This document shows positions 31,973-52,998 of a stretch of 64,000 nucleotides of DNA, in pieces. Within the stretch, counting starts at the first letter, position 1. The number at the start of each line of letters is the position of its first letter. This DNA comes from Blepharisma stoltei ATCC 30299 (Eukaryota > Protista > Ciliophora), in assembly GCA_965603825.1 (NCBI GenBank), contig CBFDEM010000047.1, positions 620,001-684,000 on the forward strand, read 5' to 3'. The notes under the pieces are model-generated. The model made no database searches, had not been told where the DNA came from, and saw only the letters and a program-made list of their open reading frames with translations. Both the position numbers and the translations under genes were made by a program.

Positions 31973-32245
31973 TTAATTCCCATACAAGAAGGAATAAGAA
32001 GCAGATAAAGAACTCCTTCCAGCAGATGATAAGCTGGATCTGCTGCTTCTTGTAAAACTTTCTATCATTCTTTGTCTATATAATGGGTTGGAATTAATAT
32101 CAAGCAAAGGTGCATTTTTAGCTTTTTCTATTCACATTTTCTTTTTGATTTCTTGTCTTTCGTTATCACGAGGCGAAATTTGCATATGAACATCCATGAT
32201 GTAAGGCAGAATTTTTTCTTTGCCTTTGCAACAGCATGAACCCAT
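31973..32245 (-). CDS. Acylated microprotein family member 1 (90 aa)
   Basis: MGSCCCKGK..KKKM-W(TGA)-IEKAKNAPLLDINSNPLYRQR, Ser-rich tail, TAA. Confidence 0.82.
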
Positions 32246-32852
32246 TTTTGATTTTATTTGTAATCCAATCAAACATGTATTAAGGGTAGCTAGTGTTTTA
32301 TAGGAATCTGGCAATCTTGATACATGAATTTGATTATGTAGTATTTATGATTGCTCAACAAAATATGGTTCTTCTAATTCTTTAAATTTCTGCTAATTTT
32401 GAGGTATTTTTATTCATTTTTTATTAATAATGCTTAAAAATAGTTTTTTAGCTTAATGTAGACTTGGCACTAATATACATATCAAATTTCCATTTATTTC
32501 AATCCATTATTCAATAATTTTATTTTCCATTAATACCAATTTTTAGAACGATTTCACAGCAATTCTTAATCAATGCTTCTTTGAATTACCAATTAACGCC
32601 TTTTAATTTTCCAATTTTCTTTAATTGATAATTTAATTATTCATAATTAATATTTATCAATGCTTATTATGCAATCTAAATTTTTTTGTTAGAAATCTGA
32701 TTGAAATAAAATGAATACTAATCTTAATTATCGCATTAATCTCGCTCTTAAATTTTGCATAATTAATCTTCATCATTCATTTTCGCTAAAGGTCTATTTC
32801 AAACTAAACTACTCATTATAATATAAATATTTCCTTTTTCATAATGGCCTTC

Positions 32853-33122
32853 TTAGAAGACGCCAATTGAAGATGAAGTGCGAGCACATAGCAGTTGCCG
32901 GTCTGAGCCAAAACTTGCAATATTATGTAGTTCTTGGTTTCTTAAAGCCCGCTTTGTGTATAACTCACTGGAATTTATATTAAGACGAGGCGCTTTTTCA
33001 GCTTTTTTCTTTCATAATTTTCTTTTATTTTCTTTTAGACTGTTCTCAGGAGAGAGCAATCCAGTGCTATATTTCATATTCGGAACAGCCTTAACTTTAT
33101 TAGCACAAATGCAGGAACCCAT
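32853..33122 (-). CDS. Acylated microprotein family member 2 (89 aa; absent from the ORF track)
   Basis: MGSCICANK..KRKL-W(TGA)-KKKAEKAPRLNINSSELYTKR..TSSSIGVF*. Confidence 0.82.
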
Positions 33123-33992
33123 GATTTGATTTATAGCTCTTTACTAATAAGTAATTCGATTAAATGGATATGTTAGGCATTTTCTAGAAAAGAAAAAAAA
33201 GAAGCTGAGGCCTTTATGAAGTTGGAATCAGTAAATTTACGAGGAAAGGTTTCGAAAAACTATAGCAGCCATCACATAGAGTTCATCGTGGATATTTTTT
33301 TATTTTTAATTTTTTACTCAATATATGAATATTTATACTTGAAAGTGAAATAATTTTATGATTAAGAAGTATAAATTTGAGAAAAAACTAAGAATTAATT
33401 GTATAGATAGCATGATTTAGATTTTAATCTTATCTTTTTAAAAAGGTTACATATTTGAAATAAAATCCATTAATAAGGGTCAATATTTTACCAAATAGAT
33501 ATGCATCTCATAAATTAGAAATTTTTTAAAACTAATCGAGGAAAACAATAATATAAATATATGAGATAAACAGAGCTCAGATTGATTTTTCCAAAATTTT
33601 TTGAGCATTGTGACATATTTATTATAAAATTTATTATTTAATTTAAATAATAGAGGCCTAAATAAAATATTGACTATAATATTCACGTTTGAAGCAAAAC
33701 AAATAAGCTTGAAAAATTATCCGAGCTTAGTTTTTCAGTTAAATTATTGAGTATACTTTCATTTTTTAGCATAAAATTATCCACTTTCCAATTTGATTTT
33801 CAAAGTCAAGCGAATAAAATTGCATTGTTCGGACATAGGATGTATTGGCGAAAAATTCTGCCATTTCAAAGAAATATTTTGCATATCTTAAGGGATTATG
33901 GAAATAATTAGCATTTGAGCTTAATCTGAAATCAGAGTAATTTAAATTATTAGAAAACGTATTTAAAAAGCATTTAAAATTTTATCTTAATT

Positions 33993-34280
33993 TTAATATA
34001 AAATTTGGCTTAATCTTCCAGGAGTAGATTGTCCATAATTCAAAGGAGAACAGATTTCCGTCGAACTGCTTTGAGTTTGTGGCCTCTCCTGAATCCTCTG
34101 CTTTCTTTTCAAAAGCAAAGAATTTTCACCAATTTTTAATAGAGGTGCCTTTTCGGCTTTGGAGTTCCAGAATCGAGTAACTTCTTTTATTTTCAGTTTC
34201 TCATAGTCAGAAAGGGTTTTTTCTGTATGAATTTCTATTATACATGTGTTTCTTCGAGTTGTGTTGATGCATGAGCCCAT
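33993..34280 (-). CDS. Acylated microprotein family member 3 (95 aa)
   Basis: MGSCIN..RFWNSKAEKAPLLKIGENSLLLKR. Confidence 0.82.
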   Translation of the reverse strand: MGSCINTTRRNTCIIEIHTEKTLSDYEKLKIKEVTRFWNSKAEKAPLLKIGENSLLLKRKQRIQERPQTQSSSTEICSPLNYGQSTPGRLSQILY

Positions 34281-36582
34281 TTTATTACCACAAATTTTAG
34301 TAAACTTACATGAAATTAACTATTTGAGAATATTCGAAAGAAAAGAAATTTTAAACCGAAAAGTTTTTGTAATCAAATTATTCAATTATAAATAAATAAT
34401 AATTATTAAGCTAACTAATTAGTGCAAGAGCTCGTTGCTAATCTACTTTTATTTAAATTATACAAATTGCTTAAATAAGAGCTTCGATCTTGGCCGCTGT
34501 ACCTTTAAACGTTGAATCTAAGTAATATATTATAAATAGCCGTCAACTTGACTTGAACTCTGCTAAAATTTTTAAAATTGGCTAAATATGCTGTTTACTG
34601 AACACGATCAGGAGAATCGAATGCTCAATAAGATGAAAATTTAAGCACGAGCAGTTAATCCGAATAAAAATAATAAGCTTAATCAAAAAAGCCGATAAAT
34701 TAGCTCTATTGCAGCGGTTACAAAATTGGCGATTTTGTTATTGCTGTTGTGTCTTTACTAGACTTCCATATTCAAATGAAAAATGGTCTATCTCAATTTT
34801 GACTTCAAAAAGAAATTACTCAGGAAATATTTTATTACATAAGCCGCTTGGAAGAGCTTCATAATTTTAATTAAAATAGGAAAAAGATTCTAAATAAGTT
34901 AGCCAATTAAAAATATACTTCAAAATTATTCTGTGTATTGAGGCCAATTATAATTTTAAATTGTATAAAATTTTGTTTTTTCTTTTTAAGCTTGCAACTT
35001 TAAAAGTAAGTATTTTATTTATTGCAAAATGAATTAAGGATTGAAAGAAATCCATAAAAAGATAAAATTCATTTTCTGCTCAAAATAAAAAACACATAAT
35101 TTCTGACTTATAATTGATTTAAATTTTGCCTGTTTTGGTCAATTCTTATCACCCACTTGAGCTTCTGTTCTTGCTTAGTATTTTCTGTCCATCACCTATT
35201 GCATGTCGCTTGGTCTTAATCTGAAAGGTCTTTGGCTTCAGGATTCGGATTTTACGGCTGCCTTCTAGCTCGAGTATCTAAGTTAAAAGTAATTTTCTGA
35301 CTAACTCTTGGCAAAGTGGAAATTTGAGGCACAGAATAATCCTGATATCGCCCAGAGCAATGCTCTAAAAGTCAAGAAAGCATCTAGATAATACTGGAGT
35401 CTCCATTTCTATCTAATTCGAAACTTAACATTTAAAATTCAACTCTGAGCGTGAATTAAGGATGGGCTTTGAACATTACCACGATGCTTAACTAGCATTT
35501 CTGTAATTTTTGGATGCATTTAAATAGCTACCCATAAGAATGTTTTAATTTATTGAGAATAGGTAAATCAATTCATTAAATTCAAATTAGGAACAATGAT
35601 ATTATTTTAGGCATGATTAAATTATATCAAATAATATAATTCATCAAAATAGAACAAGACCTATTTTCTTTATAGTTAGCTATTAAAATATTGGTGCCGG
35701 AATAATAATTAATTTAACATAAATTGTCATTTTAATTAAAGGATAAAATTCTTATATGAAGAGACCAGAACTAACTTAATGATAAGGAGCATTTTTGAGT
35801 AATTATCAGAATCCTTTCAAATAAACTAAATTTTAAGTATTTATCGCGTTTTCAATACTTTTTAATGCACAAAGCTAGTTTTTTATGATATATTTTCATG
35901 CTAAAAATTCTTCCAAAATACTGAGTAAGAAGAGAAATATAAGTTGATCTGATTATCTTTTAAAATCAATTATTTTCTTTAAACTAATAAGAGGGTTAAG
36001 GGTACTAATATTAATATTTTAAACATATCTAGCAGCCAAAACAGTGTTTTCAGGCAGATAGTTTTGCGTAGCTTCAGCTGCCTATCAAAATGTCTACAAA
36101 ATATTCCATCTCAGCCTTATTTATAAAAAATTATGTTTCTATGCTATCATTGCTAACATTGCAAAGAATTTTTATTTAGCTGCACTATTTGTCATAACTT
36201 ATACTTTTGGTGCGCATTTATAGTATCTAAGGCTTGTCATTTACAAAAATTTGAAGGTTTAACTCATCTTATTTAATATGTAAGCCAATTTTAAGTTCAC
36301 AAATCCAGGCATTAAGCCTAGTTCTTAAATTTAAGCCTCTGATTACTAATCAGCATTAAATTGAATGAAAAACTTTTAATAAGCTCACAATATAGAATAA
36401 TTTTGATTTCCTTCTAATTCAAAATAATTTATTTTATGAGTTTCTATGAAAAATGCATGCTTTAATTTTTATATGATTAAGTATTGGCTTTTTATCAAAT
36501 TTGTATATAATTGGCATATATTCTTTTTAATTTCAAGCCAAAATAAAACAATTTTTTGGTTTAGGTTATTAAATTAGGAATT

Positions 36583-36831
36583 CTAAATCAGCTCAGACTT
36601 AGAGAGGGATCATTGCCCAGTGCTCATTTTGGAAATTCTATATCAAGACTGCCGCTTGATGTATAACTGATTCGCTTCAATATTAAGTTGAGGAGCATTT
36701 CTTGCTTTAGATAATCAAAAAAGCCTTCTTTGGTTTTTATTCTGGCTTCGAAAGCTTATGGTCAGTTTCTCGATTTTATTTTCTTGATTAGATAATGATT
36801 TAGCCTTGGTAATGCCGCAGCACAAGCCCAT
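36583..36831 (-). CDS. Acylated microprotein family member 4 (82 aa; absent from the ORF track)
   Basis: MGLCCGITK..RRLF-W(TGA)-LSKARNAPQLNIEANQLYIKRQS-W-YRISKMSTGQ-W-SLSKSELI*(TAG). Confidence 0.8.
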
Positions 36832-38608
36832 AATTTTTCTTTAAAATAGAATTATTGGTTTATCTATATTAATAAATGCGATAAAATATTAAATAAACCA
36901 TGATAATTAAGCTATTTATTTTTATAAATGATAATGCAATCTTAAAATCAATTAATAAATTTTCCATATCCATAAAAACTCTGAAAAAACATTTTAAGAC
37001 AATAAAAAAATTCAAAGTAGTATTATAAATTGCGTGATTTTTTGTGCTTAGGTTTATAGGGGCTACAAAATTTATATCAAATAAAAAAAATTGAAATACC
37101 GGATTATGAGTAATTAATAAAAAAGTAGCACAGCATTTAAATATTGATAAAGATAAAATTTTTATGGAAATTTTCGATTTTTAAGCAATAATAAGAGTTT
37201 AATCCTAGTTTAGAGTGCTAGCTCATTATGAGAGTTAAAAACTATAGCTCATTGCTTTTTTATATGGAAAATATAAGTATGACTATTGGAGAATAATTTT
37301 TTATTTGTTTCTTATCGATCTAAATATTTGCAAATTTTATATAGTCGTATTATTATAATAGCTTATAGGGGCATTTAGATCGATATAAGGCATGCATGGG
37401 TCTTTCATATATAAATTTATTTAAACTGCATGCTTATAAGGAATTAGAATTAAAATGAATTGAATGCTCCCTTTAATATTTAGTATATTAAATTAAGCAA
37501 ACTTATAAAAATTGAAAACTTATCTTAAATTACTAAAAATCATCTTTAATAATTTAATTATAACACTCTGTTAATCCAAATTTATAAGATTACTTTTTTC
37601 CTAAAATTAAGTATAAAACTATAAAAAATGATTTTATCAGCTAGCAAAGCTTAATTGATAAATTAAGATAAACAATTTTACTCCCCATAATGCAACTTCT
37701 GTATTTAAAGCTATTTTCTATTTTCTCTGTCTAAAATTCTACTTCTGCTGCCAAATAAAGCTGGAAATAATTGATATCTCAGATATTTCTAAAAGCATAA
37801 CCCATTTCTCAAAAATTTTCACCTGTGTAAGCAGGAATATAAGTCCTGCATTATTCTAATTCTCATAATTAAAAAACAATAATGTCCGATCTCTAGATCA
37901 TGAGTGCATACTTTTATCTCATGGCAATATTGATCTTAAAAATTATTTTGTATATGCATAATTTGCAATACAAATTTTGAAGTATTTTCTATGGCATTTC
38001 AATGTGATGAAATTTTCTTCTAATAAAGAAAATGTAACAGCCATTTTTACTGAATTTTTAATCAGTGCTAATACCTTTTAAATATTACAAGATGAAATAT
38101 ACCTTGATTTAAACTGATAAGCTGCTACAAAACTTTTTATTGCTGTTGCTTTGAGCATTCAGCTTTTCTATTTTAAAAGACTCTTAAAACTCCCAATAAA
38201 TCGATATCATAATAAAAGAGAAAATGGAGCAGAATAAATAGTTGTGGAACTGAGAATTATTGTTTTTCATTTTGTTCATAAGCTGGATTTAATCTATTCA
38301 GTATAATAATTCATTCTCAAATTAACTGGTTTTTAAAATAATCTACTTTAGGATTTTTTTTAATTGTCCACATATATGGTACCATTTCTCAATTAGGCAT
38401 GCAAATTAATTCTAGAAGTTTTCTCTAGCATCCGAAATAGGATTTCTAATTGTAGGCTGTTATAAATTTAATCCTTAATAAAGCAAAGTTTATCCAAGTC
38501 AATCGTAAAAAAAATAATTATTTAATATCGATTTCAAACGTAAAAAAATACTTTCCTTTATTTTAAACATCAAATTTATCAAGTGGACTTTACTGGAATT
38601 TTTTACTC

Positions 38609-38869
38609 TTAATGAACAGTTAAGCTGCCACTTGATCCTGTTTTATCTATCTGCATACTGGTATCAACTGTTATAACATGATGATTTAAGCCTCTTTTTG
38701 TATACAATGTGCTGGACTCTATGTTCAACACAGGGGCTCTCTCTGCTTTCATCCTCCAAATGATATTCTTTTGGTTTTTTAAGTCTTTTTCAGCAAATGA
38801 TATCAGTCTATGTTTATTCCGAAGTTTTTGAGACATTTTGCCATTGCAAGTACAAACGCATACACCCAT
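38609..38869 (-). CDS. Acylated microprotein family member 5 (86 aa)
   Basis: Probable start ATG at 38869: MGVCVCTC..IIWRMKAERAPVLNIESSTLYTKR. Confidence 0.82.
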   Translation of the reverse strand: MGVCVCTCNGKMSQKLRNKHRLISFAEKDLKNQKNIIWRMKAERAPVLNIESSTLYTKRGLNHHVITVDTSMQIDKTGSSGSLTVH

Positions 38870-39240
38870 TTTTAATTTATAACTAATTATTATGTAAGTA
38901 TTGTAAGTAAATGAAATAAATGGGATTCCAATGCAAAAAAACAATTAAAAGCCCAAGGATGTTTTGACAATAGTAAGCAGAAATACTAATAATGATTAAA
39001 TCCTATTATTATCATTCAGGCTTTATTATAGTATATTTATGATATCTTATACTGCGTTTTTGCCAACAAGTCTTATTAAAAATTACCAAAAAAATACTTA
39101 GCATTTCAAAATTCAGTCTATTTCTTGAAAGCACTATATAAAATTTAAATTAATCTCTATATATAAAGGGCTAGTTATACTAAAAACTTATATGGATCGA
39201 AATGATAAGAAAAGAAAGGATAAAAATTATTTAATATTTT

Positions 39241-39597
39241 TTAATTTAAACCGCTTTGAAATTCATTGATTTCATTTGCAGTGCAAGTTGAGGGCGAGAT
39301 TCCACTTGTTAATGGTTCATTTGTAACATTTACAATTTCATCTTTTTCTTTAAGTTCAATCAAATTCAATATATCTATTTCAGATGCTTTTCTTCGGATT
39401 CTTTTGTTGTATAGATTACTGTTTTCTATTCTTAGCCGCGGAACATACATCAATTTTTTGATGTTAACAAGGTAATTTTGAGCAAATAATTCTCTTTGCA
39501 TTTCAAGGGTCGTATTTAGCTTTTGGGACGGAATACTTTCAGAAACTGGGGTTTTGTAATTATTGTGATGATGATTGATCCCGAAGCACGATCCCAT
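39241..39597 (-). CDS. Acylated microprotein family member 6 (118 aa, divergent)
   Basis: MGSCFG..IKKLMYVPRLRIENSNLYNKRIRRKAS. Confidence 0.78.
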   Translation of the reverse strand: MGSCFGINHHHNNYKTPVSESIPSQKLNTTLEMQRELFAQNYLVNIKKLMYVPRLRIENSNLYNKRIRRKASEIDILNLIELKEKDEIVNVTNEPLTSGISPSTCTANEINEFQSGLN

Positions 39598-40609
39598 AAT
39601 TTAAATTTATCTCGAGGTGTATCATCACAAAGATGAAACGATGAAAAATGGAATTATATTTTGAGAGACAAATTTTACAAAAAATTATTATCTTTTACAC
39701 AGTTTTTATGGGTTTTAAGGCTCAAGTTAATTAAATCACCAAGTTTTTAGGAAATTTTATAAAAAGATTATAATGGGAATGATAAAGTTCTTGAAGCAGA
39801 CTATAAGCTGCATGAAAAATTGTTTGAGAGTAAGAGAATAATGAATGAAAAGCTAAATAATTAGGCTTTCTAAGCAAATAGAACTTAATTTTATGATTAA
39901 TTAATTAGGTGTTCTTTATAGAAATATATATACAATAGGAGTAGGAATAAGAAATGCTAATTATCCATTAAAAAAGCTCGAGCAGGCAATAAAAAGAATT
40001 ATGATTATATAAGCTATATAAAAATTGCAAAAAGATTGAGAAATATCTAAATAAAAATCAGACTTTTTTTAAAATAGTGCCTGAATTTTTAGATTTTATA
40101 AGGAAAAAATTTTAATCATAATGGATTATGCTGGCCTCAAATAAAATTGCCCTATATAAATTCACCATTTTGACTTAATCATTTTGCAAATGGCAAAACC
40201 TATAATAATTTTCGAAAAATAATCAAATCAAGCCAAAATAGAAGCCATTTAATCAAATAATAAGTATTAGATTATAAAAAGCCGAAAATACAAACCTTAT
40301 AAAAATTATAATTTTATTTCGCTGAATTTTTAAATGAGATTTATAAATTATTTTAGATTTTCTAATATCATAATAAGTTTTCGAAGTAAACTGGCCACGT
40401 AACTTTTTTTTTGGAAGACCCAGATACAAATTCAAAAAAATGGCCATGCTTGGAGCTGATTTAAGTCTAGAATCCTTAAGGATAAATGAAATACCAATTA
40501 TAATAAAATAGCAAACAATAATAGATAATTTTAATTATCCAAAAAATAGTTGATTAATTATGATGAACAGTTGATCTGTTATTAAAGAAGCAATTAAATT
40601 TACATACTT

Positions 40610-40873
40610 TTAAACTGGACTTGCAAGCGTAGCTGACTGGTCACCTGAGGAAGAGAATCCATCCATTGTAGGAAGTGATTTTTGACTTACAAATTGGCAT
40701 CTCTCTAGTCGATGAATAAATAAAGGATTTATTCTTATATTCAGCTGAGGAGCTACCTTAGCCTTATCTTTCCACAATTTCCTCCTCATTTGGGCTATAT
40801 TTTCTTGATCAGCATCCTTATGTCCTTGAGGACACGTAGATGAGACTTTGAAAGTGCCACAGCAAGATCCCAT
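40610..40873 (-). CDS. Acylated microprotein family member 7 (87 aa)
   Basis: MGSCCG..RRKLWKDKAKVAPQLNIRINPLFIHR. Confidence 0.82.
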   Translation of the reverse strand: MGSCCGTFKVSSTCPQGHKDADQENIAQMRRKLWKDKAKVAPQLNIRINPLFIHRLERCQFVSQKSLPTMDGFSSSGDQSATLASPV

Positions 40874-41508
40874 TTTAGTAATTTATAAGAAATTTGCAGC
40901 ATTAAAAATATCGCCACTATTAATAAAAATAGATTAATATGCCTTAAAAGTTTAACTGCTTTTTTATATAATTATAAAAGGCGAAAATAATAAATCAATA
41001 TCTTTATAAGTCATATGATGTCACATTTTTGTTTTCATAAGTCCATTTTGTGTCAGCAAAACCAGTAGCCACACACAAAAAACTTTGAGATTTTCTAATT
41101 TTGATTATTGAATTGGTAAAAATATATAAAATAAATAATAAATTCGAGATTTATTTATTTTCTTCTGAATATTTATGTTTGCTCAAATTTATAATAGACT
41201 CACTCTTAATTAAGATGAGATAAAAGAGCTCATTTAATTCTTTTTTCAAAATGTAGTGTTATGATGTAGAAATCCTTTGTGAAACTATTTTAATTGCTAA
41301 TTTTATTGAATTTAACCTCTTTTTTAAGTAAATTTATACTAATTTACTATGGATAGAACAATTTATAAAATTTTGGCGGTAGAGCTAAAGCTCTTTCTGA
41401 CTTAAATTTTCACCTTTCGAGCTATTTATGAGAAAACTGCATATAGTAACACTAACCTAAATTATGATAGAAGACGTAAACATTTATACGTAACTTTTTA
41501 CAAATTAA

Positions 41509-41784
41509 TTAACTTGAAATTGATAGTGTACTGTCTATAGTAGAATTTGCATCATTTTGATACAAATTCTGCTTTTTAATCTGCGATTTAGCCACTCTTT
41601 TTTTATATAACTTGCTAGCGTTTATATTCAGCATTGGCGCACAAGCAGCTTTTGTTTCGTAAATTTTCCTTTTTTGTATTTGAATTCGTGTTTCAGCATC
41701 TATAAATAGGCCTGTCTTGAATTTATCCTTTCTTCGAATTGGAATATCAATATTTTTGAAATCTCTTCCACAGCATGAGCCCAT
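41509..41784 (-). CDS. Acylated microprotein family member 8 (91 aa)
   Basis: MGSCCG..KRKIYETKAACAPMLNINASKLYKKR. Confidence 0.82.
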   Translation of the reverse strand: MGSCCGRDFKNIDIPIRRKDKFKTGLFIDAETRIQIQKRKIYETKAACAPMLNINASKLYKKRVAKSQIKKQNLYQNDANSTIDSTLSISS

Positions 41785-42258
41785 AATAATTTTTAATAAA
41801 AATCTCCAAGTTTATAAAGAAATCATAAAATGAATATGGCAGAAACTCAAACTTAGTGGCTGATTTTTTTATGCAAAATTACAAAAAATAATTCGAATTT
41901 AGGTTAAAAATTTTTAATTTTTTTGCAATTTGATACCTTATTCGCTTTAATTTTTATATTTTAAATTTTCATATAAAATGGATTACTGAATTTGAAGATC
42001 TTTGGAGAATTGTGATAATTCTTTATATTTAAATTTGCCTCATTAGTTATAATCTTTAGACATGCTTTATCTAATGATTGAATTCAATCTATGTATCAAA
42101 ATAAGAAAAATAAATATTAGTGGCTGATTTTTTATTTTTTTCATAAAGTGGTAATTCAAAAGTTAGATTAAGATTTTTGAGATCATTGATGATGCTTTAT
42201 CACTGATCATGCTTTTAAAGCTAAAACTTCATATATAAATTTAAATTTTAATGGTAAA

Positions 42259-42552
42259 TTAAATTAAGACTGATGATACACTAGACTTCGTTGAATAAAC
42301 TTTATCAAACTCTATGTCTCTTGTGTTTTGTTTGCACATTAGCCTTATTGTTGCCCTAGATTTATAAAGACTGCTATCTTGGATATGCAGCTTAGGAGCA
42401 TTTTGAGCTTTCTTTTTATAAATTTTTGTTTTTTGCTTAAACAAAGTTTGGTTATTAAGTAAAATTGTTATCTTTACTTGTTTGTACTCTTTCTTATGCT
42501 GTAAAGCTTGAGGATTCTTCTTATTGATAGCTATAAAATTGCAAGCGCCCAT
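42259..42552 (-). CDS. Acylated microprotein family member 9 (97 aa)
   Basis: Probable start ATG at 42552: MGACNF..KIYKKKAQNAPKLHIQDSSLYKSR. Confidence 0.8.
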   Translation of the reverse strand: MGACNFIAINKKNPQALQHKKEYKQVKITILLNNQTLFKQKTKIYKKKAQNAPKLHIQDSSLYKSRATIRLMCKQNTRDIEFDKVYSTKSSVSSVLI

Positions 42553-42872
42553 AAAAGAAAATTTTATCAATTCTAGAGTTTTATGGAAAAATGAAAAATT
42601 ATGGCCTTTATGTAATATGGCTAAGGTATATCTTTTGGAACAATTAAGATTTTCATTTTTAATTTAGATCTCTACTTTTGTTAAATGGTGCTAAAGTTTA
42701 GATCTATATTCCTGGTTTTAAATAAACTTCTAAAATTGTTTTAATTTCCTAGAAATTATCGAATAAGTCCATGGAAAGGAAGAGTAAATATTATCTTAGT
42801 TTTATAATTTCTGATTGAAAGATTTATTTTTTAAAGCATTCTGTTATCAAAATGATAAACTATTATTTAAAA

Positions 42873-44204
42873 ATATTTATTTTGTTTCATTATTAAATAA
42901 ATATGGCTTTGAAGTATAAAATAATAAATTGATATTAAATTATTTGATTAGAATAGTTATGGTAAAAAAGCGTCTTTATTGCCGTTAGCTGTTTTTGGTT
43001 AACTCATGCTATAGCAACTTGATAATCTCTTACTTATATCTTCAGATTTTTTAATGAAGGCTGTTTTATTAGCTTGGATTCGTTTATTTATTGATGAGCA
43101 ATTCTTTTCAAAATGATCCTTTAAATAGTGTACAATAAATGTAGTTTTATTTTAGCAGCTAGCTTATTATGATAAATTAAGAGGCTGTTAATAATTGCTC
43201 TGAATTATTAATTATTATAGCCTAATGCATAGAAGCCTTCATTATAATATTAATTATTTAAAATCATACTTGCATTGCTATAAATTACGTTCTTAAGATT
43301 TTCATCTAATTCAGAGAGTTTAATCAATATTTCTTTACGAATTTCACGTATCTCTTGTGTTGATGTGTTGGGGTATAAAACATTAATGAATCTTTTCAGC
43401 ACAAAATAATCGTCTTTTTCTATAGCTTTGATTAGTAAATTTATTGGTATGTTTTCAATCAAAAAACTTATTGATTCAATATTTCGTGCATTTACACCAG
43501 CTTCGTAAAAAGAGTCAATGTATTTTTCAATAAATTTAAGAGTTTCGACTTTGGGATATCTTTTCATAATCCCTTCAAGAAATTCGACGTTTCCACCGCA
43601 TAATGCTCAGCGAATTTTGCATGCAATATTAGATTCGGAGTCTCGGCGCATCATCTTTAATTTTTGAATCTGATAATTTGGATTTTTTCATTTTATTTAT
43701 TATAAGCTAAATAAAAACTTGATAATAAATGGTGCTTCTTTAATACAACAAAAATATATGAAATTTATGTTTTCATTCTTTAATAAAAGTGCCAAGAATT
43801 TTTTAAATACTGCTGGAGATGGCGAAAAATAAAGCAATTTAGCATTTATCAGTTTCCTTTTATATGATATTAAAAATAACTTATGCTTATAAAAAAATTT
43901 AGGGAATTTTTTTATGAAAGAAGAGTCACGGACCGGGCTCGATTGAGGTGGCACATCTGCTAAAAATTAGCATAGACGCCTAGCATTTAAAATGAAAACT
44001 GAAATCTCTTTCAACCAAAATGGAAAAAGTCACTTAAGTACTAGTTTAAATAGAGAAATTGTGATCTATCGACCTCTCGATTTTAATAGTCTTAAACAGA
44101 GGCAAAGCATGACTTATCACTTTTATAAGCAAAAAACTTATATATTTATTTTGTTTCAGTATTAAATCTAATAAATATAGCTTGAAGTAGAAAATAATAA
44201 AATT
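42873..44204. repeat. Pair of ~60-bp imperfect direct repeats (42873-42930 and 44142-44204) flanking the orphan ORF
   Basis: ATATTTATTTTGTTTCA[T/G]TATTAAAT..AAATAT[G/A]GCTT(T)GAAGTA[T/G]AAAATAATAAA occurs twice. Confidence 0.7.
43250..43654 (-). CDS. 134-aa orphan helical protein
   Basis: ATG ATG CGC at 43654 is in frame through one TGA with track ORF 43250-43567 (MMRRDSESNIACKIR-W-ALCGGNVEFLEGIMKRYPK..). Confidence 0.5.
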
Positions 44205-44411
44205 TATCCTTTGGATTGCCAGTTGGTGTTGTATTCCTTGCTGTGATCGCTAGATAGGCAAGTGAAAAATTGCTATAAGCCATTAGATCCATCATTTTAA
44301 TTATAATTAATATTAAAAATTAATATTTTAATATTTTTATTTATGAAGTTTTAACAGCTATAAAAGTTATAAGTATTTAAATATTAATTACGTTAGCTAA
44401 TGATTACAAAG

Positions 44412-46556
44412 CTAGATAATAATAAAATTAGTAACTGTGTTTAGAATGAGATCCGAGTTAATAGGCTTGGCTATGTAAAATTTCATCCCAGATGAATAGC
44501 ATTTAATCACATTTTCATCTGACAGATTTGCAGTAATCCCAACAATATTCGGCATCGAGCTTATTTTTCTATCTTGATACAGATTTTTTATTTTTTTCGA
44601 AACTTCCCACCCATCTAGGCTTGGCATAACGCAGTCCATTATTACTAATTTCACCGGCTTTTTTCTATCATCTTGCCACAATATTTGTTTTATTGCTTGT
44701 TTTCCGCTTAAAGCTTCAATATATGGAACATTTATTTTCCTTAAAAATGATGCAATAACTTCTCTGCTGAAATCACTATCATCAACAATAAGGACTTGAG
44801 GGTGGGAGCTTTTATTATATATTTTCTGTGGAAAAGAGTTAATAGAATCAGCTTCACACACTGAATTTTCAAAACTTTGGTCAAGAGAATTGAAAAAAGA
44901 GCACCCCTCAAATAAATGCAAGGTAAAATAGAAAGCAGAGCCTTGAAAAAGTGACGATGAAATATGAACTCCAGATCCTCCTAGCTTTTGGACGAGTATT
45001 TTTGAAATATGCAAGCCAAGCTCTCCCGACTGTGAATAATTGCAGCAATAACCTATTGATGGCGAATTCAGCTGTTTAAGCCTTTCTTTTGGTATACCAA
45101 TTCCTGTATCTGAAACCATAATTTTAAGCCCATTATTTTTATTCAATAAAGCACACAGTTCAATTTGTCCTCTGTTGGTAAATCTAAATAAAAATTACTT
45201 CAAAGCATTGCTCAAAAGATTTATTATTATTTGGCAAAATCTTTGGGAATCCGTATTCACAATTTCAGGAATGCCAGGGTCTATTCTTAAAGACAGTTTT
45301 ATATTTTTCTTCTGAGCCAGTATATTATATAAATTATAGCATCCCCTCAATATAGTCCGGATATTGAATTCTTGCTTGTGCAATTTAAATTCTTCTTGGA
45401 TAATTTGAGAAAAATCAAGCAAATTACTAATAAAATGAGTTAAAATGTTGGTGAAAACTCTTATTTGGACCAGCTTCCCTAAAAGTTCACTTCCTAATCT
45501 ATCTCCATGATCATCAAAAATCTGGTCAATTAATTTTAATATTTCGGTCATTGGATTTTTAATTTCATCTGAAATTGACCCTAATATCAGAGTTTTGTAT
45601 TTATTTTGTGCTGAAGTTTGCTCAAGCTCTATAATCTGATTGGCATTGCTAGCACTCACTAAAAGCGCTTCTTGATCTTTCCACAGAATTTTTTTGGCTT
45701 TTCATTCTAAATTAATGGCCCCAATTTTTACTATTCCTAAGGACAGCTCATTATTAATTGGCAAAGACTTTAATGAATGCAGGCAATCAATTAAAAATTC
45801 AGAGTTAGAGTACTGATTTTCAAATTTTTTGCCTTCGACATACTTCAAGCCCCTTAACTTTGCTGTGACGTTTTCTAATGATGCTCCAACGTAGAGTATC
45901 ATTTTATCGTTGATAAAAGTTGGAATAAATTCATCGTTGAACACAATCAATCCATCTGGGAAAGCTTGTAAAATTACTGCAAGGCTTTTTTCAGCTTGCT
46001 CTAATTTTCTTCTAAATGCGTATCGGTCAAAGCTTTTTGATCTTCTATAGGATTCTTCATAAATATGAATAAAAATTATAAGGAATGGCCCATAGATTTC
46101 ATTAGGAGATGATAATAAGATTTGGCCTGATAGAAGCTTTCAGCCATGCCATATAAAGACGTGTTTTCCTATCAAAAATAAGAGAAACCATAAACTTTTG
46201 ACAAAATATTTTTGAATGCATAGAACCATTGTTGACTCTATTATGATAATTGCCTTGTTTTCTTCTTTTAAAGATAAGGAAATATAATAAAGCCCAAAAT
46301 TCATTATTTCTGTCGCAAAAATTACAATTACTGATGAGATTGGATTATATTTTATTACATTAGACCTGACCATAATAATAGAAAGCACAATCGTTATGGT
46401 CATCAGAATGCTTGGAATTGTCCACACAAAGTCAAAGCCTAAATAAAATCCTAAAATCAATTTGTATACAGTCGAAGTGATAGCAATGAAATAGGCTGCA
46501 TTTTTAAAAGCTGTGACGGAGATCTCAAATTCTTCTTTATACCAATTATCGAACAT
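44412..46556 (-). CDS. Membrane-bound hybrid histidine kinase-like protein (TMs, PAS-like, HisKA, HATPase, receiver), 709 aa, H-box His replaced by Asp
   Basis: Four track ORFs joined by two TGA codons and the 15-nt intron 45184-45198. N-box TDSQRFCQIIINLLSNALK|FT; G1 VSDTGIGI; G2-like GELGLHIS; receiver VLIVDD..VIMDCVMPSLDG..ITA..AKP. Confidence 0.88.
45184..45198 (-). other. 15-nt intron GTAATTTTTATTTAG
   Basis: Contains an in-frame TAA; removal restores the NALKFT N-box. Confidence 0.92.
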
Positions 46557-47135
46557 ATTTATTAGTTTATAAAAAAAAGAATTTTCATTTGTAAAATATA
46601 TTTACTTTCAGAAATGCTGAGGATTTAGGCAAATCTAGGCTATTTTTAGATTCATAAATAATTTTTTTTAATAAAAGATGTATAATTCATTTACTTTGCA
46701 ACAATTGATTTATGAGAAAATTCTATTTGAATTAAAGACCCGAATGCATTAGAATGATACTTAAGTTGAATAAAAAATTAAAATTTTTATTTTATTAATA
46801 TGGATTAATTAAATAAAGTATTCCGAATCCTATTGGGAAGTCGTTTAATTGAAATATTATCAATTATGATACTGAATATATTTTAATAAGTCTAATATAA
46901 TTAAAACTTGACAGAATTTTGAAAAAATACTTTTCTTAATAAAAATCTATGTTGCAATCAAAAATATACGATTTTGTAGGCATCATAATCTTATAATATC
47001 TATTACTGACAAGTAAATTGAAAATTTATTTTATTTTCTGATAAACGAATATGGAGTTTTTGAACCTAAAATAAAAGCAACAAGTTAAGATTAGTAGATG
47101 TTAAAAATTATTTAATTTCAATTGGAAAGCAATAC

Positions 47136-47402
47136 CTATACCACCACATAAGCATTGTTCATGCCAATAGTTAGATCTTTACAATCTTCTTTAAGCCTAT
47201 TTAGGCGTTTGCTATACAAGCTGTTTTTGCCTAAATCCAGTTTTGGTGCATGAACAGCTTTTTTAATTCTGATTAAATTCATCTGTATTAAGAATTCATT
47301 TTTTGATGTGATTTTAGTGTTGCCATTAGTTTCTTTGAAATGATCATCAAGATCTGCAATTGTTCTAAAGCGTTTTTTTTGCTTAGAGTAACACAAGCCC
47401 AT
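47136..47402 (-). CDS. Acylated microprotein family member 10 (88 aa)
   Basis: MGLCYSK..NLIRIKKAVHAPKLDLGKNSLYSKRL. Confidence 0.82.
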   Translation of the reverse strand: MGLCYSKQKKRFRTIADLDDHFKETNGNTKITSKNEFLIQMNLIRIKKAVHAPKLDLGKNSLYSKRLNRLKEDCKDLTIGMNNAYVVV

Positions 47403-48174
47403 TTATTTTTTTGAGTATTAACTTAACTGTTTAATGGCGTTCAAAAAATATGAAGCAAGGCAGTTGTTTTATAAGGCACAATAAAATTCAATTCGAAATC
47501 GTATTAGGTTTGACACAATAATCTTATTCACCAAGTTTTTAATTAATCAATTTGTCAAAAACTATTTAAAAGAAATATATTATTAATAGATATATAGCAT
47601 ATCTAAAGTTTAAACTTATGCTCAATCTATGCCTTTTAGGATTTTTGACCAAATCACATTTGACATTTTCAATCATGATATACACAAAAATGGACTGTTT
47701 CTTTTTGGTTTCAGAATTCATTTTATTTGATGAAAATGGATTTTAGCTTAATAAATTCAAATTTATCACAAGCTATTTTATAAAAAATTTCGAAATAAAA
47801 CTGATAAGTATCATTTTCAAATAATTAAATAAGACTTTTCTGTATTAGAGTCAATAAAGTTAATTTACTTTACAATTAGTTTTAATTTATTTAGATTATA
47901 TGAAGTGCTCAATTCTAACAGAAATAAAGTTATTGTATTGTTTTAGAACAAAATAGCACTGATATTAAGTCATCAATCAATTTCAGACTCCATAAAAATT
48001 TTGTCAATAAGATTTACAATATTGAGAATTTTTAACAAATTTTATGAATCGATAACATTTTAAATTATGCATTTGAATTAAAAGAAAATTATGATTTTAA
48101 ATTTTCTTCAAAAGTCCATTTTTTAAACTTTCCTTTACGGTTTCAGCAAGTAAAAATAATAAATTTTATTTATT

Positions 48175-48444
48175 ATGGGCGCGTGCTACGGATCTAAGCC
48201 AAAACCATCTAACAACAAAAAAATTTGCCCTTTAAAGATTCATAATGATAATGAAAACATGTATGAGAGTCTAAAAATCGAAGGCCAAAAGAAAAGATTA
48301 TTTTTGAAAAAAGCTTTGGAAGCTCCACTGCTTAATATTACTGAAAATGATTTATATCAAAGAAGAGCATCACGATGACAGAACGAAATGTATCAATCCT
48401 GCAGTAATCTTGAACAATCAACCTCAACAAACTCATTGTGCTAA
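48175..48444 (+). CDS. Acylated microprotein family member 11 (89 aa; only + strand member)
   Basis: MGACYG..FLKKALEAPLLNITENDLYQRRASR-W(TGA)-QNEMYQSCSNLEQSTSTNSLC*. Confidence 0.85.
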
Positions 48445-49340
48445 AACTAAAAGATAATTATAAGATTAATCAAAAAATTGTATTAAATAATGTTTTATTT
48501 TAGCAAAAGCTAAATATTTTCAGTTGCTTTTTAATTTGGAGCAAAGATGATAGGGATAGACAATAGTTGATATTATTTTTATGTTTAGTAAACTGCTAAA
48601 TAAAAATGGAAATAAGTCCGATCAGAATGCATTATTTGAAGTATGGACATAATAATTGATTAAAAATTTAAAAAATATTTAAATTTATCATAAAATCGTG
48701 AAAAAATTTGGGCTGAGTTTAAATTCAAAAAAGGCAATAATTCTCGTATATTTGTCTCTTAAAAAGAAAGAGTATTGTAGCCTTATATTGACGAAAGCAA
48801 ATTTCTTTTTATATCGGAGTAAAGTAGAACTGAAAAGAGCTGCTATGCTAAGCAAATAGGTTTCTTCAAGAACTTTTCTCTTTTCATCAAAAAATAATTT
48901 TCGAATTTTTGGTATAAATTTTTGCGAGCTATGTAAAAATTAAAGGTTTGAAGATTTTATTATCTGTAGCAAATTTTCTTAAAGGCTACAAAACTAAAAA
49001 TTTCATAAATTTAAGATCGTCAAGAATAAAAAGTTTTTTAATTAAATTTTGATTTAATTTCACTCTTTAGAAGATGGAAGCTCTATTCCTAGCCTTCACT
49101 AAAGAAAATTTAGCTTGATCTCAAAAAAATAATATTGTTTTTAAAGCTTTATATTTGCATAAATATAAAGTAATTTCATAAGTGCCTATCAAATATAAAT
49201 CATCATCAATCATGATTTATTGTATATAACCTTCTTTTCTGTCGAGAATAAATTAGCTTTATTTTTTTGGTAACTTAAATGGAGCTATTCAAACTTAAAA
49301 ACAAAGTTATACAAATTAGTTATTTAGTTTAGTCTAACAC

Positions 49341-49500
49341 TTAAGCTCCGCATAAAGAGCAAATCTTTTGGGAGACTATTCCCAGCCTAGCCAAGCGCCT
49401 ACTGTATAAGAGGCTCTCATTGATAGCTAAAATCGGAGCATGAGCTGCCTTTTTGACTCTTATTAAGCTTCAAATATTTTTTTTATCATCATCTTTGAAG
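49341..49500 (-). pseudogene. 5'-truncated remnant of a microprotein family member (paralogue of members 10 and 12)
   Basis: KDDDKKNI-W-SLIRVKKAAHAPILAINESLLYSRRLARLG..CSLCGA*. There is no in-frame ATG or MGxC upstream before a TAA. Confidence 0.65.
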
Positions 49501-51516
49501 TATAGCACAAGTGCGTATGATGCCCATAAATGGGAGAATGCTGACAACTCCAGAGATCGAACAACTTGGGAGTTGAAAATGCTCCAGATATGAACTTTTA
49601 TGTCAAAAAAATATTTGTTCAAAAAATTTCAATTAGGAAATTAAAAATAGGTTATTATATTAGATTTGTAATTTTGAAACTATTATTGTCATAATGCTTT
49701 ATTAGTTTCATTATATTTTAAATATTCCAAGATTTTAAGTTTTAAGCGCTTTTTCCAGCACAAAGAATATATATTTTGCTTCATAAAACTTAATTTTATA
49801 TTGAACAAAGCAGCATTCATTAAAGTAAAAATAATTTGCATTCATCATCAGATACCTTTGATAGTTTAGCTCTCCGCTTTTGCCAACTGGCTGGCTCTAT
49901 TTTTTTCTGATTTTCTCTCTGGATTGTAATACTCTTTGCTCCAGAAGTTGCTTCCTGATCTTTTCACTAGTGAAAATAACGATGGCATCTCCTGATAGCA
50001 GCAGCCTACACCTTAGAAATTCCCCTGGCTTCATGTAATCTCCAGCGTAACTATCAGTCTAGGTACAGTTCTTTCTTCTCTCTTGAATATTTGTTTTTAT
50101 TTGGAAATACTTTCACCGAATTTCCTAAATGGTTGGATTCCTGAATTTCTGGCAGTGTTTCTGTTGGAGTCGCAAACCCTTAGAACGCTCCGCTCGCGCT
50201 AAATCCCAAATGCTGAATTTCTTCTTCTTGGACAGCCTTGAGTGTAACTGTTTTCCTTTTTCGCTGGCTCATATTAATAAAAGTAAATAATTTGCATTTA
50301 ATTATGGAATTATCCAGCACAAATATCTCTTATTTTATATTAGTCAAATATTTTTACAATCAAAAGCAAATTTTTTTTCCAATTAGAAGTAAAATTTTTG
50401 AACAAGGGCGTTTGGGAAGTGTTACTATCTAATATAAAGAATTTATATAAATTCTTAAAGCCATTGTCAAGCTTAGTAAAAATATCGGGGAAAGGCATCA
50501 TTAATTGCTTATTTCTAATATTTTAGCCTAATTTGCAGAAATGCTGTTGCACATTATTGTTTTAGGCTTAATCAGTTCGCTAAATTTAAACTCTGCTCCT
50601 TTCGAGATTCATTTAATCCTCAATCTTAATTTTTTCATATAATTAAATTTTCAAAGAATGTCAATTTTAATTTTTAGTCCTTGCATAAAAATGGGTCATA
50701 AAAATTGTACTTGCAAAAACCGGAATAATAACTTAAATTGGCCTATAAAAAAAGTAAAGATTGCAACCTAATTAGAAAGCTACTTGCTATGGGCCATGAA
50801 ATTTGTTAACGGGCAAAATATTTCTAAGCAACTTATAATAATATTTTATCGAATAAGAATATCATCCTCGAAGTATCCAGCACTTTTTTAGACTTTAATG
50901 TATCAAACTGGAATTTATTAAACTATTTTATTTTGCCAGGCTTTTATCCTCGCTAATTATCGCTTTTTAAAGCATTTTCTGTCAAAAATTCAATAATTAA
51001 AGTTTTTTAATGACTTGCAAATTAATAGCGATTTTGGCTTAAGTATTTCACATATGCTTATCAATCTAATTTAATGGTAATTAAACTAAAAAAGCAGTTA
51101 AAGCAAAATACCATAGCCTTCATCTCTAATATTAAAGGGTTTGCTAATAGCAGTTATCATAGTGTAACAGTATGGCTAATGGTGATTTAATACTTACAGA
51201 TAACTAAAGGAAGTAGTAGTGAGAAAACACAACAGTTTTGCCTGCTACTAGGGACGCAAACTATTAATATATAAATTAAATCTTATGATAAATTAAAAAG
51301 GAAAAATATATATTTTTGTAAAATATATATAAAACAAGCTTGATAGAGCCTTCTAGAATATATAAATAATGATTTTATTCTTATAATGCTTTTTTTTATC
51401 GAGAATTGATTAGATTTATCTTTATGGTTACCTAGGTTGTGTGTTGAGAACTAAAAATTGAGAGAAGCTTACTTGAAAAATTTATAAATATTAAGTTATT
51501 TAGTTTAGTGAAAAAT

Positions 51517-51783
51517 TTAAACAACGCATAAGGAACTTATCCCAATTATCTTTATCTTTTTTGAGACTTCTCTGAGCCTAACTAAACGCTTGCTGTATAA
51601 TATGCTTTCATTTAGAGTTAAAATAGGAGCATGGGCTGCCTTATTAACTCTTATTAAATTTCATTGCATTTTGAGGTCATTTTTAGCACTATCCTTGGAG
51701 GAGCTGTGAGTGTCTTTTAATTGGTCGTCAAGGACTGCAGCTGTTTTAAAGCATTTTTTATTCTTAGTAGAGCAGGAACCCAT
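51517..51783 (-). CDS. Acylated microprotein family member 12 (88 aa; absent from the ORF track)
   Basis: MGSCSTKNKKCFKTAAVLDDQLK..Q-W(TGA)-NLIRVNKAAHAPILTLNESILYSKRL; colinear with member 10. Confidence 0.83.
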
Positions 51784-52728
51784 TTATAATTGAGTATGAA
51801 ATATCAGTTTAATGGTGTTGAAAATTTTATTGGAAAATTTAATAGCTTGATGATTAAAAAACTAAATTTTTCGAAATATAGGTGGATAAAGATAATAAGA
51901 CTTTTATATAAAAATTAAATTGGATAACACTGCCTTAAATTGTCTTGGGCATGGGATTAGTAATAGCAAGTAAAAGTATCTTGAATGGGGTTATTTTTCC
52001 ACAATGGTTTTATCTTCCTAGTGAGCTTAAATTTTTAAGTTTTTAATGCTTTGCAAATTTTCAACTTAAAAAAGAATTTTTCTAGAATTTGTGAAAAAAA
52101 TTTTCATATCAGAATTCGCATATTCGAAACTATTTTTACTTTAAGGCTTATTTTAGATCTATTGGTCTTTTAAATGTTCTAGGTTTAAATTTTAAGCTCA
52201 TTATTTGAAAATTTTGAAAGGAGCAATATTTCTGAGATTTCTTAAAAAATTACATATGATAAGGAGTCAAATCATATATAGGAAAAATTAAAAAGAAGTG
52301 ATTTTTAATTAAAATTATCATGCAAAAGATGTTTTTAATTGTATATTATTTCGTAAATACTTAAAAATTTTTCAATAAAATTTTCATAAATATTTTTTCA
52401 GATTATCGATTCAAGCCTAAAGATTCTTGCGAGAATAATATAGAAAATATTTAAAAAAATTCAATTTTTAAAGTGCTTTCATATATTTCTCATCCTTAAT
52501 CTGAAACTATTTTAAGATTGCATAAATGATTTCTTTAGCTAATTTGACATTATTTAAATTCATATCCTGACCAGATTTTCTTCATTTTTATTCTAAACCT
52601 GTTTAAAAATGCAAATTTAATTATTGATATTATTCAATATATATAAAACAGCTATTAATCTATATCTTAATAAAGCATTAATTATTGTTATCGGCATTCT
52701 AATTATGTCATTCAGATCGCATAAGAGT

Positions 52729-52998
52729 TTAGCAAGATGAAGTAGTCGATGTTGACTGCTCAAGGTTGCTACAAGACTGATACATCTCATTTTGTCATCG
52801 GGATGCTCTCCTTTGATATAAATAATTTTCGTTAATATTTAGCTGAGGAGCTTCCAATGCTTTTTTTTCGCAAATTCTTTTGTGTTGGCCTTCAGCTTTT
52901 AACTTTTCGTATATGCTTTCATATTGATCGGTGGTTTTGTGAGGGCAAATCTTCTTAGCTTTAGAAGTCTTTGACTGAGTTCCATAGCAAGCACCCAT
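52729..52998 (-). CDS. Acylated microprotein family member 13 (89 aa)
   Basis: MGACYG..EKKALEAPQLNINENYLYQRRASR-W(TGA)-QNEMYQSCSNLEQSTSTTSSC*; close paralogue of member 11, with the sequence after the TGA conserved. Confidence 0.85.

Follow-up and report, generated by a model that had tools for sequence, protein, structure and literature searches.

An array of small open reading frames in Blepharisma stoltei

The DNA studied here, referred to as the window, comprises 64,000 nucleotides from the somatic (macronuclear, MAC) genome of the ciliate Blepharisma stoltei ATCC 30299 (contig CBFDEM010000047.1, positions 620,001 to 684,000), and it carries between positions 31973 and 52998 an array of genes for very small proteins that share an M-G-x-C N-terminus, probably a lipidation signal, and a strongly conserved module of 27 residues. 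The GC content of the window is 30.6%, and TGA was read as Trp in all window translations, a code that has already been published for the B. stoltei genome (PMC9942806). Translated in this way, the array consists of 13 intact open reading frames (ORFs) of 82-118 aa, 12 on the minus strand and one (48175) on the plus strand, all of which start with MG-[SLVA]-C and contain the module (Table 1, where members are named after their first coordinate). A hidden Markov model (HMM) of the family, run against stop-to-stop segments of the six-frame translated window, returned the 13 ORFs at E-values from 1e-13 to 1e-20 and one further fragment, 49344-49640, while nothing beyond these scored below E=2. 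The fragment lacks the putatively acylated N-terminus and shares with member 51517 the module only (79% nucleotide identity across 110 nt), and it is therefore regarded as a pseudogene remnant.

In-frame TGA codons are present in 6 of the 13 members. A TGA is found at the conserved aromatic position -8 of the module (see below for the numbering) in 31973, 32853 and 36583, where the paralogues 33993, 38609 and 40610 have TGG, and members 48175 and 52729 carry a TGA at an identical position in the tail. An earlier note on this DNA, made from the sequence alone, had listed 13 ORFs and one remnant of the same size range, strand distribution and N-terminus, and it had ascribed the absence of three members from an ORF track, and the shortening of three more, to the reassigned TGA. 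Translation and the HMM search gave the same inventory, the six TGA-containing members are consistent with the explanation offered, and the description proved right in every detail that could be checked.

Table 1. Members of the microprotein array, with positions counted from the first letter of the window. C48 denotes another contig of the same assembly; X1-X4 are sequencing runs (see text); W(-8) is the aromatic position of the module.
Coordinates (strand)	Length and start	Module	Remarks
31973..32245 (-)	90 aa, MGSC	32066-32146	HMM E 8e-19; TGA at W(-8); 64% aa identity to C48:118101
32853..33122 (-)	89 aa, MGSC	32946-33026	RevD regex match; HMM E 3e-17; TGA at W(-8)
33993..34280 (-)	95 aa, MGSC	34101-34181	TGG at W(-8); tail with SP and TP sites; counterpart C48:113710
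36583..36831 (-)	82 aa, MGLC	36649-36729	three in-frame TGA, one at W(-8)
38609..38869 (-)	86 aa, MGVC	38690-38770	contig of run X1, 38561-38853 only; identical protein public, nameless
39241..39597 (-)	118 aa, MGSC	39397-39477	divergent module (VP replaces AP); contigs of all four runs, 39227-39663; SP site in tail
40610..40873 (-)	87 aa, MGSC	40706-40786	contigs of all four runs, 40577-40908
41509..41784 (-)	91 aa, MGSC	41593-41673	best HMM score; modelled with AlphaFold2; contigs of X1, X2 and X4, 41494-41801, short X3 contig within
42259..42552 (-)	97 aa, MGAC	42352-42432	no contig in the four runs
47136..47402 (-)	88 aa, MGLC	47202-47282	paralogues 51517 (48% aa identity) and C48:110795
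48175..48444 (+)	89 aa, MGAC	48289-48369	sole plus-strand member; 72% aa identity to 52729
49344..49640 (-)	truncated remnant, no MG start	module half only	HMM E 3e-9, profile positions 32-74; upstream part unrelated to 51517
51517..51783 (-)	88 aa, MGSC	51583-51663	found as ORF and by family HMM
52729..52998 (-)	89 aa, MGAC	52804-52884	found as ORF and by HMM; counterpart C48:108452

Conservation of the N-terminus and the module

Conservation was counted over 155 family members, with positions numbered from the invariant Pro, which was set to 0. The N-terminus of these proteins reads M-G-[S/V/I/N/L/A]-C-[V/I/C/A]-[S/G/T/C]-K-[K/Q]; a variable linker of 25-45 residues separates this putative lipid anchor from the module, and the tails behind the module are variable and rich in Ser and Thr. 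The 27-residue module can be written as [RK](-12)xx[IVL](-9)Φ(-8)xxK(-5)[A/D/I/V]x[N/K][A/V](-1)P(0)xL(+2)x[L/I](+4)xx[N/S](+7)xL(+9)[Y/F](+10)x[K/R](+12)R(+13)[K]. P(0) is present in 100% of the members, and the other key positions are conserved nearly as well: K(-5) in 95%, L(+2) in 98%, [LI](+4) in 96%, [NS](+7) in 99%, L(+9) in 87%, [YF](+10) in 93% and R(+13) in 99%. The motif originally read from the array, KAxxAPxLxIxx[NS]xLYxKR, is stronger and longer than first written. A conserved basophilic phosphosite behind [KR]R was considered and rejected, as Ser or Thr occupies position +16 in just 24% of the members.

Gly2 is found in all 13 window members and in 151 of the 155 members altogether, 138 of which have the MG pair as the first two residues of the protein as called. 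Of the 151 MG members, 143 have Cys4 and 147 have a Cys somewhere at positions 3-6. A PROSITE-type rule, G-{EDRKHPFYW}-x2-[STAGCN]-{P}, fits 114 of the 151, with Ser favoured at position 6 and Lys at position 7, and by inspection the member sequences contain neither a signal peptide nor a transmembrane segment. The counts for Gly2 and Cys4 and the fit to the rule uphold the N-myristoylation/S-palmitoylation signal that had been recognised in the array, and the members are probably N-myristoylated on Gly2, S-palmitoylated on Cys4 and held on the cytosolic face of a membrane. The SH4 N-termini of Src-family kinases and G-alpha-i have the same M-G-[small]-C-x-[STG]-K arrangement; in these proteins, however, only the first ~7 residues are comparable, and they carry large catalytic domains.

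Selection and expression

The ten closest paralogue pairs had numbers of synonymous substitutions per site (dS) from 0.7 to undefined (saturated) and of nonsynonymous substitutions per site (dN) from 0.03 to 0.64, and dN was lowest in the module in most pairs. In the module of the pair C2/C47-56k, 20 synonymous changes were counted as compared to 2 nonsynonymous ones, and for the tails of 48175 and 52729 the counts are 15.5 and 2.5, respectively. The dN/dS ratios of the paralogue pairs are clearly not near 1, in agreement with the purifying selection on a short module that had been proposed. As judged from these sequences, the microproteins form a real, expanded and diversified family of paralogues in which a short module is kept by purifying selection.

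For expression, we used the contigs of four sequencing runs (X1-X4) from one 2022 study, which are guessed to be RNA, over positions 38000-43900 of the window, where five members lie. Members 38609, 39241, 40610 and 41509 are matched by contigs that extend at most ~15-66 nt beyond the genes (Table 1), whereas no contigs of the four runs cover the spacers in this region and none was obtained for member 42259. Since a DNA library would cover the spacers, the contigs were taken to represent short monocistronic transcripts. Mapping of transcripts had been suggested in the earlier note, and on these presumed RNA runs four of the five members examined are apparently transcribed. A ~1.8-kb contig of runs X1 and X2 touches the spacers at 38010-38028 and 40339-40363 by only 19-25 nt, which suggests a short sequence in common with an unrelated transcript.

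Family size, arrays and relatives

A profile of nine window members was searched at E<=0.01 against the 41.46-Mb assembly of 64 contigs, in which the window is C47:620001-684000. At least 42 family loci were found genome-wide, all lying in open frames no longer than 134 codons, and 23 of the 42 are located in three arrays: the window holds 14, C48:108-118 kb holds 6 and C36:570-573 kb holds 3. In inverted orientation, the array on C48 is colinear with that of the window (52729-type, 51517-type, ..., 33993-type, ..., 31973-type), and beside it, at C48:119387-120451, lies a 79%-identical paralogue of the 355-aa ORF 29850-30914(+), which is found at the low end of the window array. The colinearity and the neighbouring paralogue together indicate a duplicated block, the array being older than the block duplication. 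The ABCG and histidine-kinase genes of the window are not part of the C48 copy.

When 1.84 billion cluster representatives were searched exhaustively with HMMER (E<=1e-3), 172 were matched, and the 150 listed are all 59-118 aa long and nearly all aligned from residue 1. The named relatives among the matches listed are hypothetical proteins of Stentor coeruleus (OMJ79068.1, OMJ75075.1 and OMJ67161.1) and unnamed products of B. stoltei, the remaining ones listed coming from metagenome or run assemblies. This breadth was revealed by HMMER; a word-indexed homologue search had returned B. stoltei proteins only when a small alignment was the query, and 9 proteins with a large one. NCBI and UniRef give Blepharisma stoltei as the source of exact or near-exact matches. 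Environmental members are found on gene-dense eukaryotic contigs alongside kinase, PP2C, DHHC, EF-hand and dynein light-chain genes. One metagenome scaffold from the European Nucleotide Archive, AT-rich (28.6% GC), ciliate-like and from an uncultured organism, has eight same-strand members within 9 kb (L065:4898-13640), and a contig with 54% GC (L034) has two adjoining members. Together with the B. stoltei arrays, these contigs show that tandem arrays recur and that the family is present in genomes of very different composition (29-54% GC). The GC-rich environmental contigs were not placed by counts of 15-16-nt GTAA..TAG mini-introns, of which there was no excess even in the Blepharisma window. 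The family, initially described as expanded and diversified within the array, is accordingly confined neither to this locus nor to this genome, and Stentor, one of the ciliates in which a search had been advised, has members in Stentor coeruleus.

Pfam gave no match for 9 of the window members, and over 150 aligned members there were scattered sub-threshold matches only, none of them consistent. A profile search against the sequences of solved structures gave 0 matches at E<=10. These results and the fold searches described below agree with the statement that the proteins belong to no named family. A literature search returned no paper on the Stentor locus tags, nor one that combines Stentor with myristoylation and palmitoylation. 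In databases the proteins are present only as unnamed or hypothetical entries. New are the module, its copy number, the organisation in arrays and the possible two-way docking motif discussed below.

Predicted structure of the module

Modelled from its single sequence (ESM Atlas), member 38609 is disordered, with a predicted local distance difference test (pLDDT) value of 0.35. AlphaFold2 (AF2), supplied with a 150-sequence alignment, gave for member 41509 block-mean pLDDT values of 95-98 over residues 31-70, and the model consists of a helix (residues 30-47), a non-helical linker holding A-P-x-L-x-I, and a second helix (residues 58-80) that begins directly after [N/S]. The module is thus very confidently predicted to be a helix, an extended P-x-L-x-[LI] linker and a helix, in which [N/S](+7) may act as the helix N-cap. 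Segments that become ordered upon binding typically give a confident model only when an alignment is supplied, and the module would accordingly be a conditionally folding segment, adopting its structure upon contact with a partner. Searches with the AF2 model by Foldseek against the pdb, by VIA-align and by shape in the Atlas gave generic long helices and coiled coils only (Z <= 4.1), and the ESM Atlas had no usable match by features and generic rows by structure (TM < 0.45).

Resemblance of the module to MAP kinase docking motifs

Among catalogued linear motifs, the module resembles most those that dock to mitogen-activated protein kinases (MAPKs). The reverse docking (revD) class DOC_MAPK_RevD_3 of ELM, the Eukaryotic Linear Motif collection, is defined by the regular expression (regex) [LIVMPFA].[LIV].{1,2}[LIVMP].{4,6}[LIV]..[RK][RK] (PMC5753338), and this pattern was found inside the module in 112 of the 155 members, including 10 of the 13 in the window, as compared to 5.5% of composition-matched shuffles. 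A forward basic residue and the RevD pattern on one and the same hydrophobic core were found in 109/155 members and in 0/3100 shuffles. The loose general docking motif (D-motif) consensus (PMC4670726) fits all 155 through K(-5)-x4-P-x-L-x-[LI], as it also does 76% of shuffles; a strict HePTP regex fits 29/155, and JNK-type motifs of JIP1 and NFAT4 were found inside the module in 0/155. Taken together, the MAPK rules cover seven of the ten best-conserved positions, whereas the PxIxIT pattern of calcineurin covers just the P-x-L-x-[LI] core. As to other docking motifs, the cyclin RxL motif occurs at background level in the family members, and the PP1 motif RVxF ([RK]-x(0,1)-[VIL]-{P}-[FW]) was found in the module of 10/155 members and anywhere in 23/155, compared to 11% of shuffles.

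The resemblance extends to individual segments. The docking segments of MAPK-activated protein (MAPKAP) kinases are RSK1 PQLKPIESSILAQRR (PQLKPI...LAQRR), MK5 NNPILRKRK and MK2 SNPLLLKRRKK (PMC4705221). The second half of the module, [NS]-x-L-[YF]-x-[KR]-R-[K], is in residue-for-residue register with NPLLLKRRKK of MK2 and NPILRKRK of MK5, so that N/S-x-[LI]-Φ-x-[KR]-R-[KR] is common to these kinases and the family, and the P-x-L core is like that of RSK1.

Candidate partners are present in the genome of B. stoltei, where 34 loci carry the MAPK signature T-x-Y...TRWYRAPE. The gene L059:1018-2088:-, which is free of TGA and introns, codes for a MAPK of the ERK type; this kinase matches human ERK2 and plant MPK6 at E 1e-113 and has an acidic D-E-E at the common-docking position. 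The two MAP2K-like genes L067 (C30:373929-376957) and L068 (C34:398094-401122) have classical N-terminal D-motifs, KR-x-LxL and KK-x-LxL, respectively; in both genes the D-motif is on a short first exon, followed by a 15-nt GTAA...TAG intron and then the kinase domain. [ST]P is the site at which MAPKs phosphorylate, and the number of [ST]P sites in the tails of family members, 39, is higher than in shuffles (24.4 +/- 4.2).

From sequence patterns we infer lipidation, membrane tethering and MAPK binding, and we tentatively suggest that the microproteins are membrane-tethered MAPK docking decoys, scaffolds or substrates. They would be small, otherwise disordered proteins, lipid-anchored to the cytosolic face of membranes and presenting the module at the end of a linker. 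The module would dock into the D-groove of MAPKs, with P(0), L(+2) and [LI](+4) filling the hydrophobic pockets, and with K(-5) ahead of the core and [KR]R(+12,+13) behind it making the basic contact to the acidic common-docking site. Because basic residues flank the core on both sides, the module would be readable both as a classical and as a reverse docking motif. Through their differing tails, the at least 42 paralogues would each draw some of the expanded set of MAPKs (at least 34 TxY kinases) to membranes, or sequester or present them there, and members with [ST]P sites in the tail would double as substrates. The earlier note had thought of adaptor or inhibitor peptides, and the docking match may give this idea a concrete candidate partner.

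Several observations weigh against MAPKs as the partner. The stricter form of the revD motif given in a review (with the X2 spacer) is found inside the module in just 8/155 members, and A(-1), [NS](+7) and [YF](+10) are equally conserved and yet lie outside the MAPK rules. Linear-motif regexes are promiscuous, as is evident from a broad PxIxIT pattern that also fits 133/155 members, and the RevD class was built on six ELM instances, all of them metazoan (PMC5753338, PMC4670726). Neither MK2 nor RSK nor any other chain of solved structure was matched in profile searches, even with the threshold relaxed to E<=10. An [ST]P site is present in just 25 of 72 long-tailed members and 3 of the 13 window members. 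Nor is there linkage to MAPK genes beyond chance, one member lying 4.5 kb from a MAPK locus (C56) where ~0.3 pairs within 5 kb are expected. A predicted complex of the L059:1018-2088:- kinase with residues 30-72 of member 41509 gave ipSAE values of 0.02 and 0.01, a result from a method unproven on peptides, run without controls or family alignments, which counts neither way.

Alternative explanations

That the proteins are lipid-anchored and that their module docks to some conserved cytosolic partner is likely, and it is the identity of this partner that the alternatives chiefly concern. The same architecture might serve another conserved cytosolic protein that is absent from the motif catalogues, such as a calcium-dependent protein kinase (CDPK), protein kinase A (PKA), an NDR kinase, or a protein of the cytoskeleton or of trafficking. 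The ten strongly conserved positions, A(-1), [NS](+7) and [YF](+10) among them, suggest a dedicated interface of ~27 residues, which is longer than typical D-motifs, and AF2 is very confident on the helix-linker-helix for which no known family or structure was matched. Nothing indicates a specific alternative, however, and the overlap with the RevD and forward D-motif rules in 109/155 members and 0 shuffles would then be due to chance. We consider such a partner a doubtful but serious possibility.

An unlikely explanation is that P-x-L-x-[LI]-polar constitutes a docking strand of the PxIxIT type for calcineurin (PP2B), the members being membrane anchors, inhibitors or substrates of this phosphatase, like AKAP79 and RCAN in animals. 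The broad pattern mentioned above, P[^PG][IVLF][^PG][IVLF][TSHEDQNKR], is found in 7.9% of shuffles and thus fits the family far more often, the core is a non-helical linker in the AF2 model, and palmitoylated calcineurin anchors are known in animals. The strict pattern.P[^P]I[^P][IV][^P], on the other hand, fits 1/155 members, position 3 being Leu in 98%; calcineurin docking accounts for 3-4 of the ten conserved positions and for none of K(-5), L(+9), [YF](+10) and R(+13), and the family members have no second motif of the LxVP type.

It is somewhat harder to believe that an EF-hand protein, such as Ca2+-calmodulin or centrin, is bound by the pair of basic amphipathic helices, which would thereby couple Ca2+ to membrane association, as in the myristoylated calmodulin targets MARCKS and NAP-22. 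Helix 1 does combine [RK](-12), R(-11), K(-6) and K(-5) with hydrophobic residues at -16, -13, -9 and -8, ciliates are rich in EF-hand proteins, and 2ygg, one of many weak structural neighbours of the helix-linker-helix model, is a two-helix calmodulin-binding region. Its Z of 3.7 is within the noise of helical matches, though, and no 1-8-14 or 1-5-10 anchor spacing is conserved; moreover, calmodulin targets are usually poorly conserved, so that an invariant Pro, an N-cap and a fixed spacing in divergent members would be unexpected.

The module might also have no protein partner at all, the basic helix-kink-helix binding acidic lipids, self-associating, or clustering or shaping membranes, for instance those of the cortex or of pigment granules. 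A high positive charge close to the lipid anchor, structural neighbours that are long helices and coiled coils, and the expansion of the family in the pigmented, contractile heterotrichs Blepharisma and Stentor would be in line with this. It is nevertheless improbable, as lipid-binding basic regions tolerate drift, whereas the fixed spacing and near-invariance of P, L, N/S, Y and R argue for a stereospecific protein interface, and the hydrophobic positions are too few for insertion. Finally, the reading as chance or decaying ORFs, for which it may be said that the RNA nature of the runs was guessed, is largely refuted by the scores of the 13 ORFs in the HMM search (E 1e-13 to 1e-20), by dN far under saturated dS, by contigs confined to the ORFs and by conservation in Stentor and in unrelated environmental contigs of 29% to 54% GC, and an unlipidated N-terminus with the basic clusters acting as a bipartite nuclear localisation signal, a role that the MK2 segment resembled by the module also has, is just as remote in view of an MG-x-C kept in >90% of members, which a nuclear signal does not need.

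Comparison with known systems

The known revD motifs, those of RSK1, MK2, MK5 and PEA-15, have in common with the module the sequence Φ-x-Φ-x-Φ, a short helical linker and L-x-x-[RK][RK] in a disordered region able to fold on binding. They are, however, located in the C-terminal tails of metazoan kinases or in a death-effector-domain protein, whereas the family consists of stand-alone, putatively lipid-anchored microproteins. The linkers of the family are the shortest that the RevD regex permits (1 and 4 residues), its invariant upstream Lys and conserved upstream helix are without revD counterpart, and there is no detectable homology. Classical D-motifs, also called kinase interaction motifs (KIMs), of MAP2K N-termini, HePTP and MEF2A likewise consist of a basic residue, a linker and φL-x-φA-x-φB with one-residue spacing, and have a helical N-terminal end; unlike these, the family adds a conserved C-terminal basic helix.

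With respect to overall architecture, small dually acylated and disordered anchors with one docking element are a kind of protein that is already known. LAMTOR1 (p18) is small and mostly disordered with a myristoylated and palmitoylated MGCCYS N-terminus, and through it a signalling scaffold, the MP1-p14 scaffold of MEK/ERK included, is anchored to membranes. It has no sequence similarity to the family, and it is a single-copy protein of ~160 aa that wraps roadblock-domain dimers, in contrast to at least 42 paralogues with one short module. In smAKAP (C2orf88) and AKAP18-alpha, an MG-C lipid anchor is combined with a single short docking helix, by which a kinase is brought to membranes. This helix is amphipathic and serves the dimer of PKA regulatory subunits, whereas the module of the family has an extended core with an invariant Pro and lacks that helix pattern.

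Other genes in the window

A hybrid histidine kinase is encoded in the middle of the array by 44415-45119(-) and 45198-46556(-); the downstream ORF has the HATPase_c end and a response-regulator receiver (E 9e-18), the upstream ORF is predicted by eye to be membrane-rich, and the gap of 78 nt between them may be an intron or a frameshift. Also inside the array is ORF 43253-43654(-) (134 aa), which has no Pfam match and is probably expressed, a contig of run X1 (43486-43640) covering part of it. Two tandem ABCG-type half-transporters (ABC_tran and ABC2_membrane), 53201-55069(-) and 55234-57096(-), adjoin the high end of the array. Three tandem ORFs, 23878-25002(-), 25194-26399(-) and 26553-27527(-), encode 375, 402 and 325 aa, the middle one being an ADP-ribosylglycohydrolase (E 5e-31); the identical spacing of four in-frame TGA codons indicates that the first two are recent paralogues. 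The 637-aa, TGA-free ORF 324-2234(+) has a tubulin-folding cofactor D C-terminal domain (E 7e-33).

Implications

Giant, highly patterned ciliates are models of single-cell morphogenesis, regeneration and photobehaviour. Microproteins are under-annotated, and a gene call with the standard code would lose or truncate 6 of the 13 genes described here. The size of the family (at least 42 copies in 41 Mb), its age, seen in two colinear arrays with saturated synonymous sites and in arrays of unrelated environmental genomes, and its sharp constraint over 27 residues point to contact with conserved cell machinery, and the family almost certainly contacts a conserved piece of it. With considerable reservation, one may go further and picture a large, ancient family of heterotrich ciliates and related uncultured protists whose module is a two-way MAPK element, a P-x-L-x-L core with a basic residue on each side. 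No D-motif of the reverse type would have been seen before outside the MAPKAP kinases of metazoans, nor any that is free-standing and tethered to membranes, and dozens of paralogues with differing tails would divide an expanded MAPK repertoire among the membrane domains of one giant cell. Should the module indeed occupy the MAPK groove, the tails of metazoan MAPKAP kinases would be greatly exceeded in age and distribution by reverse docking motifs as a class, the family would show that membrane-tethered docking decoys occur in nature, and its members would supply short peptides for perturbing MAPK signalling in ciliates. If the partner is a different one, the module would be a ready bait for finding it.

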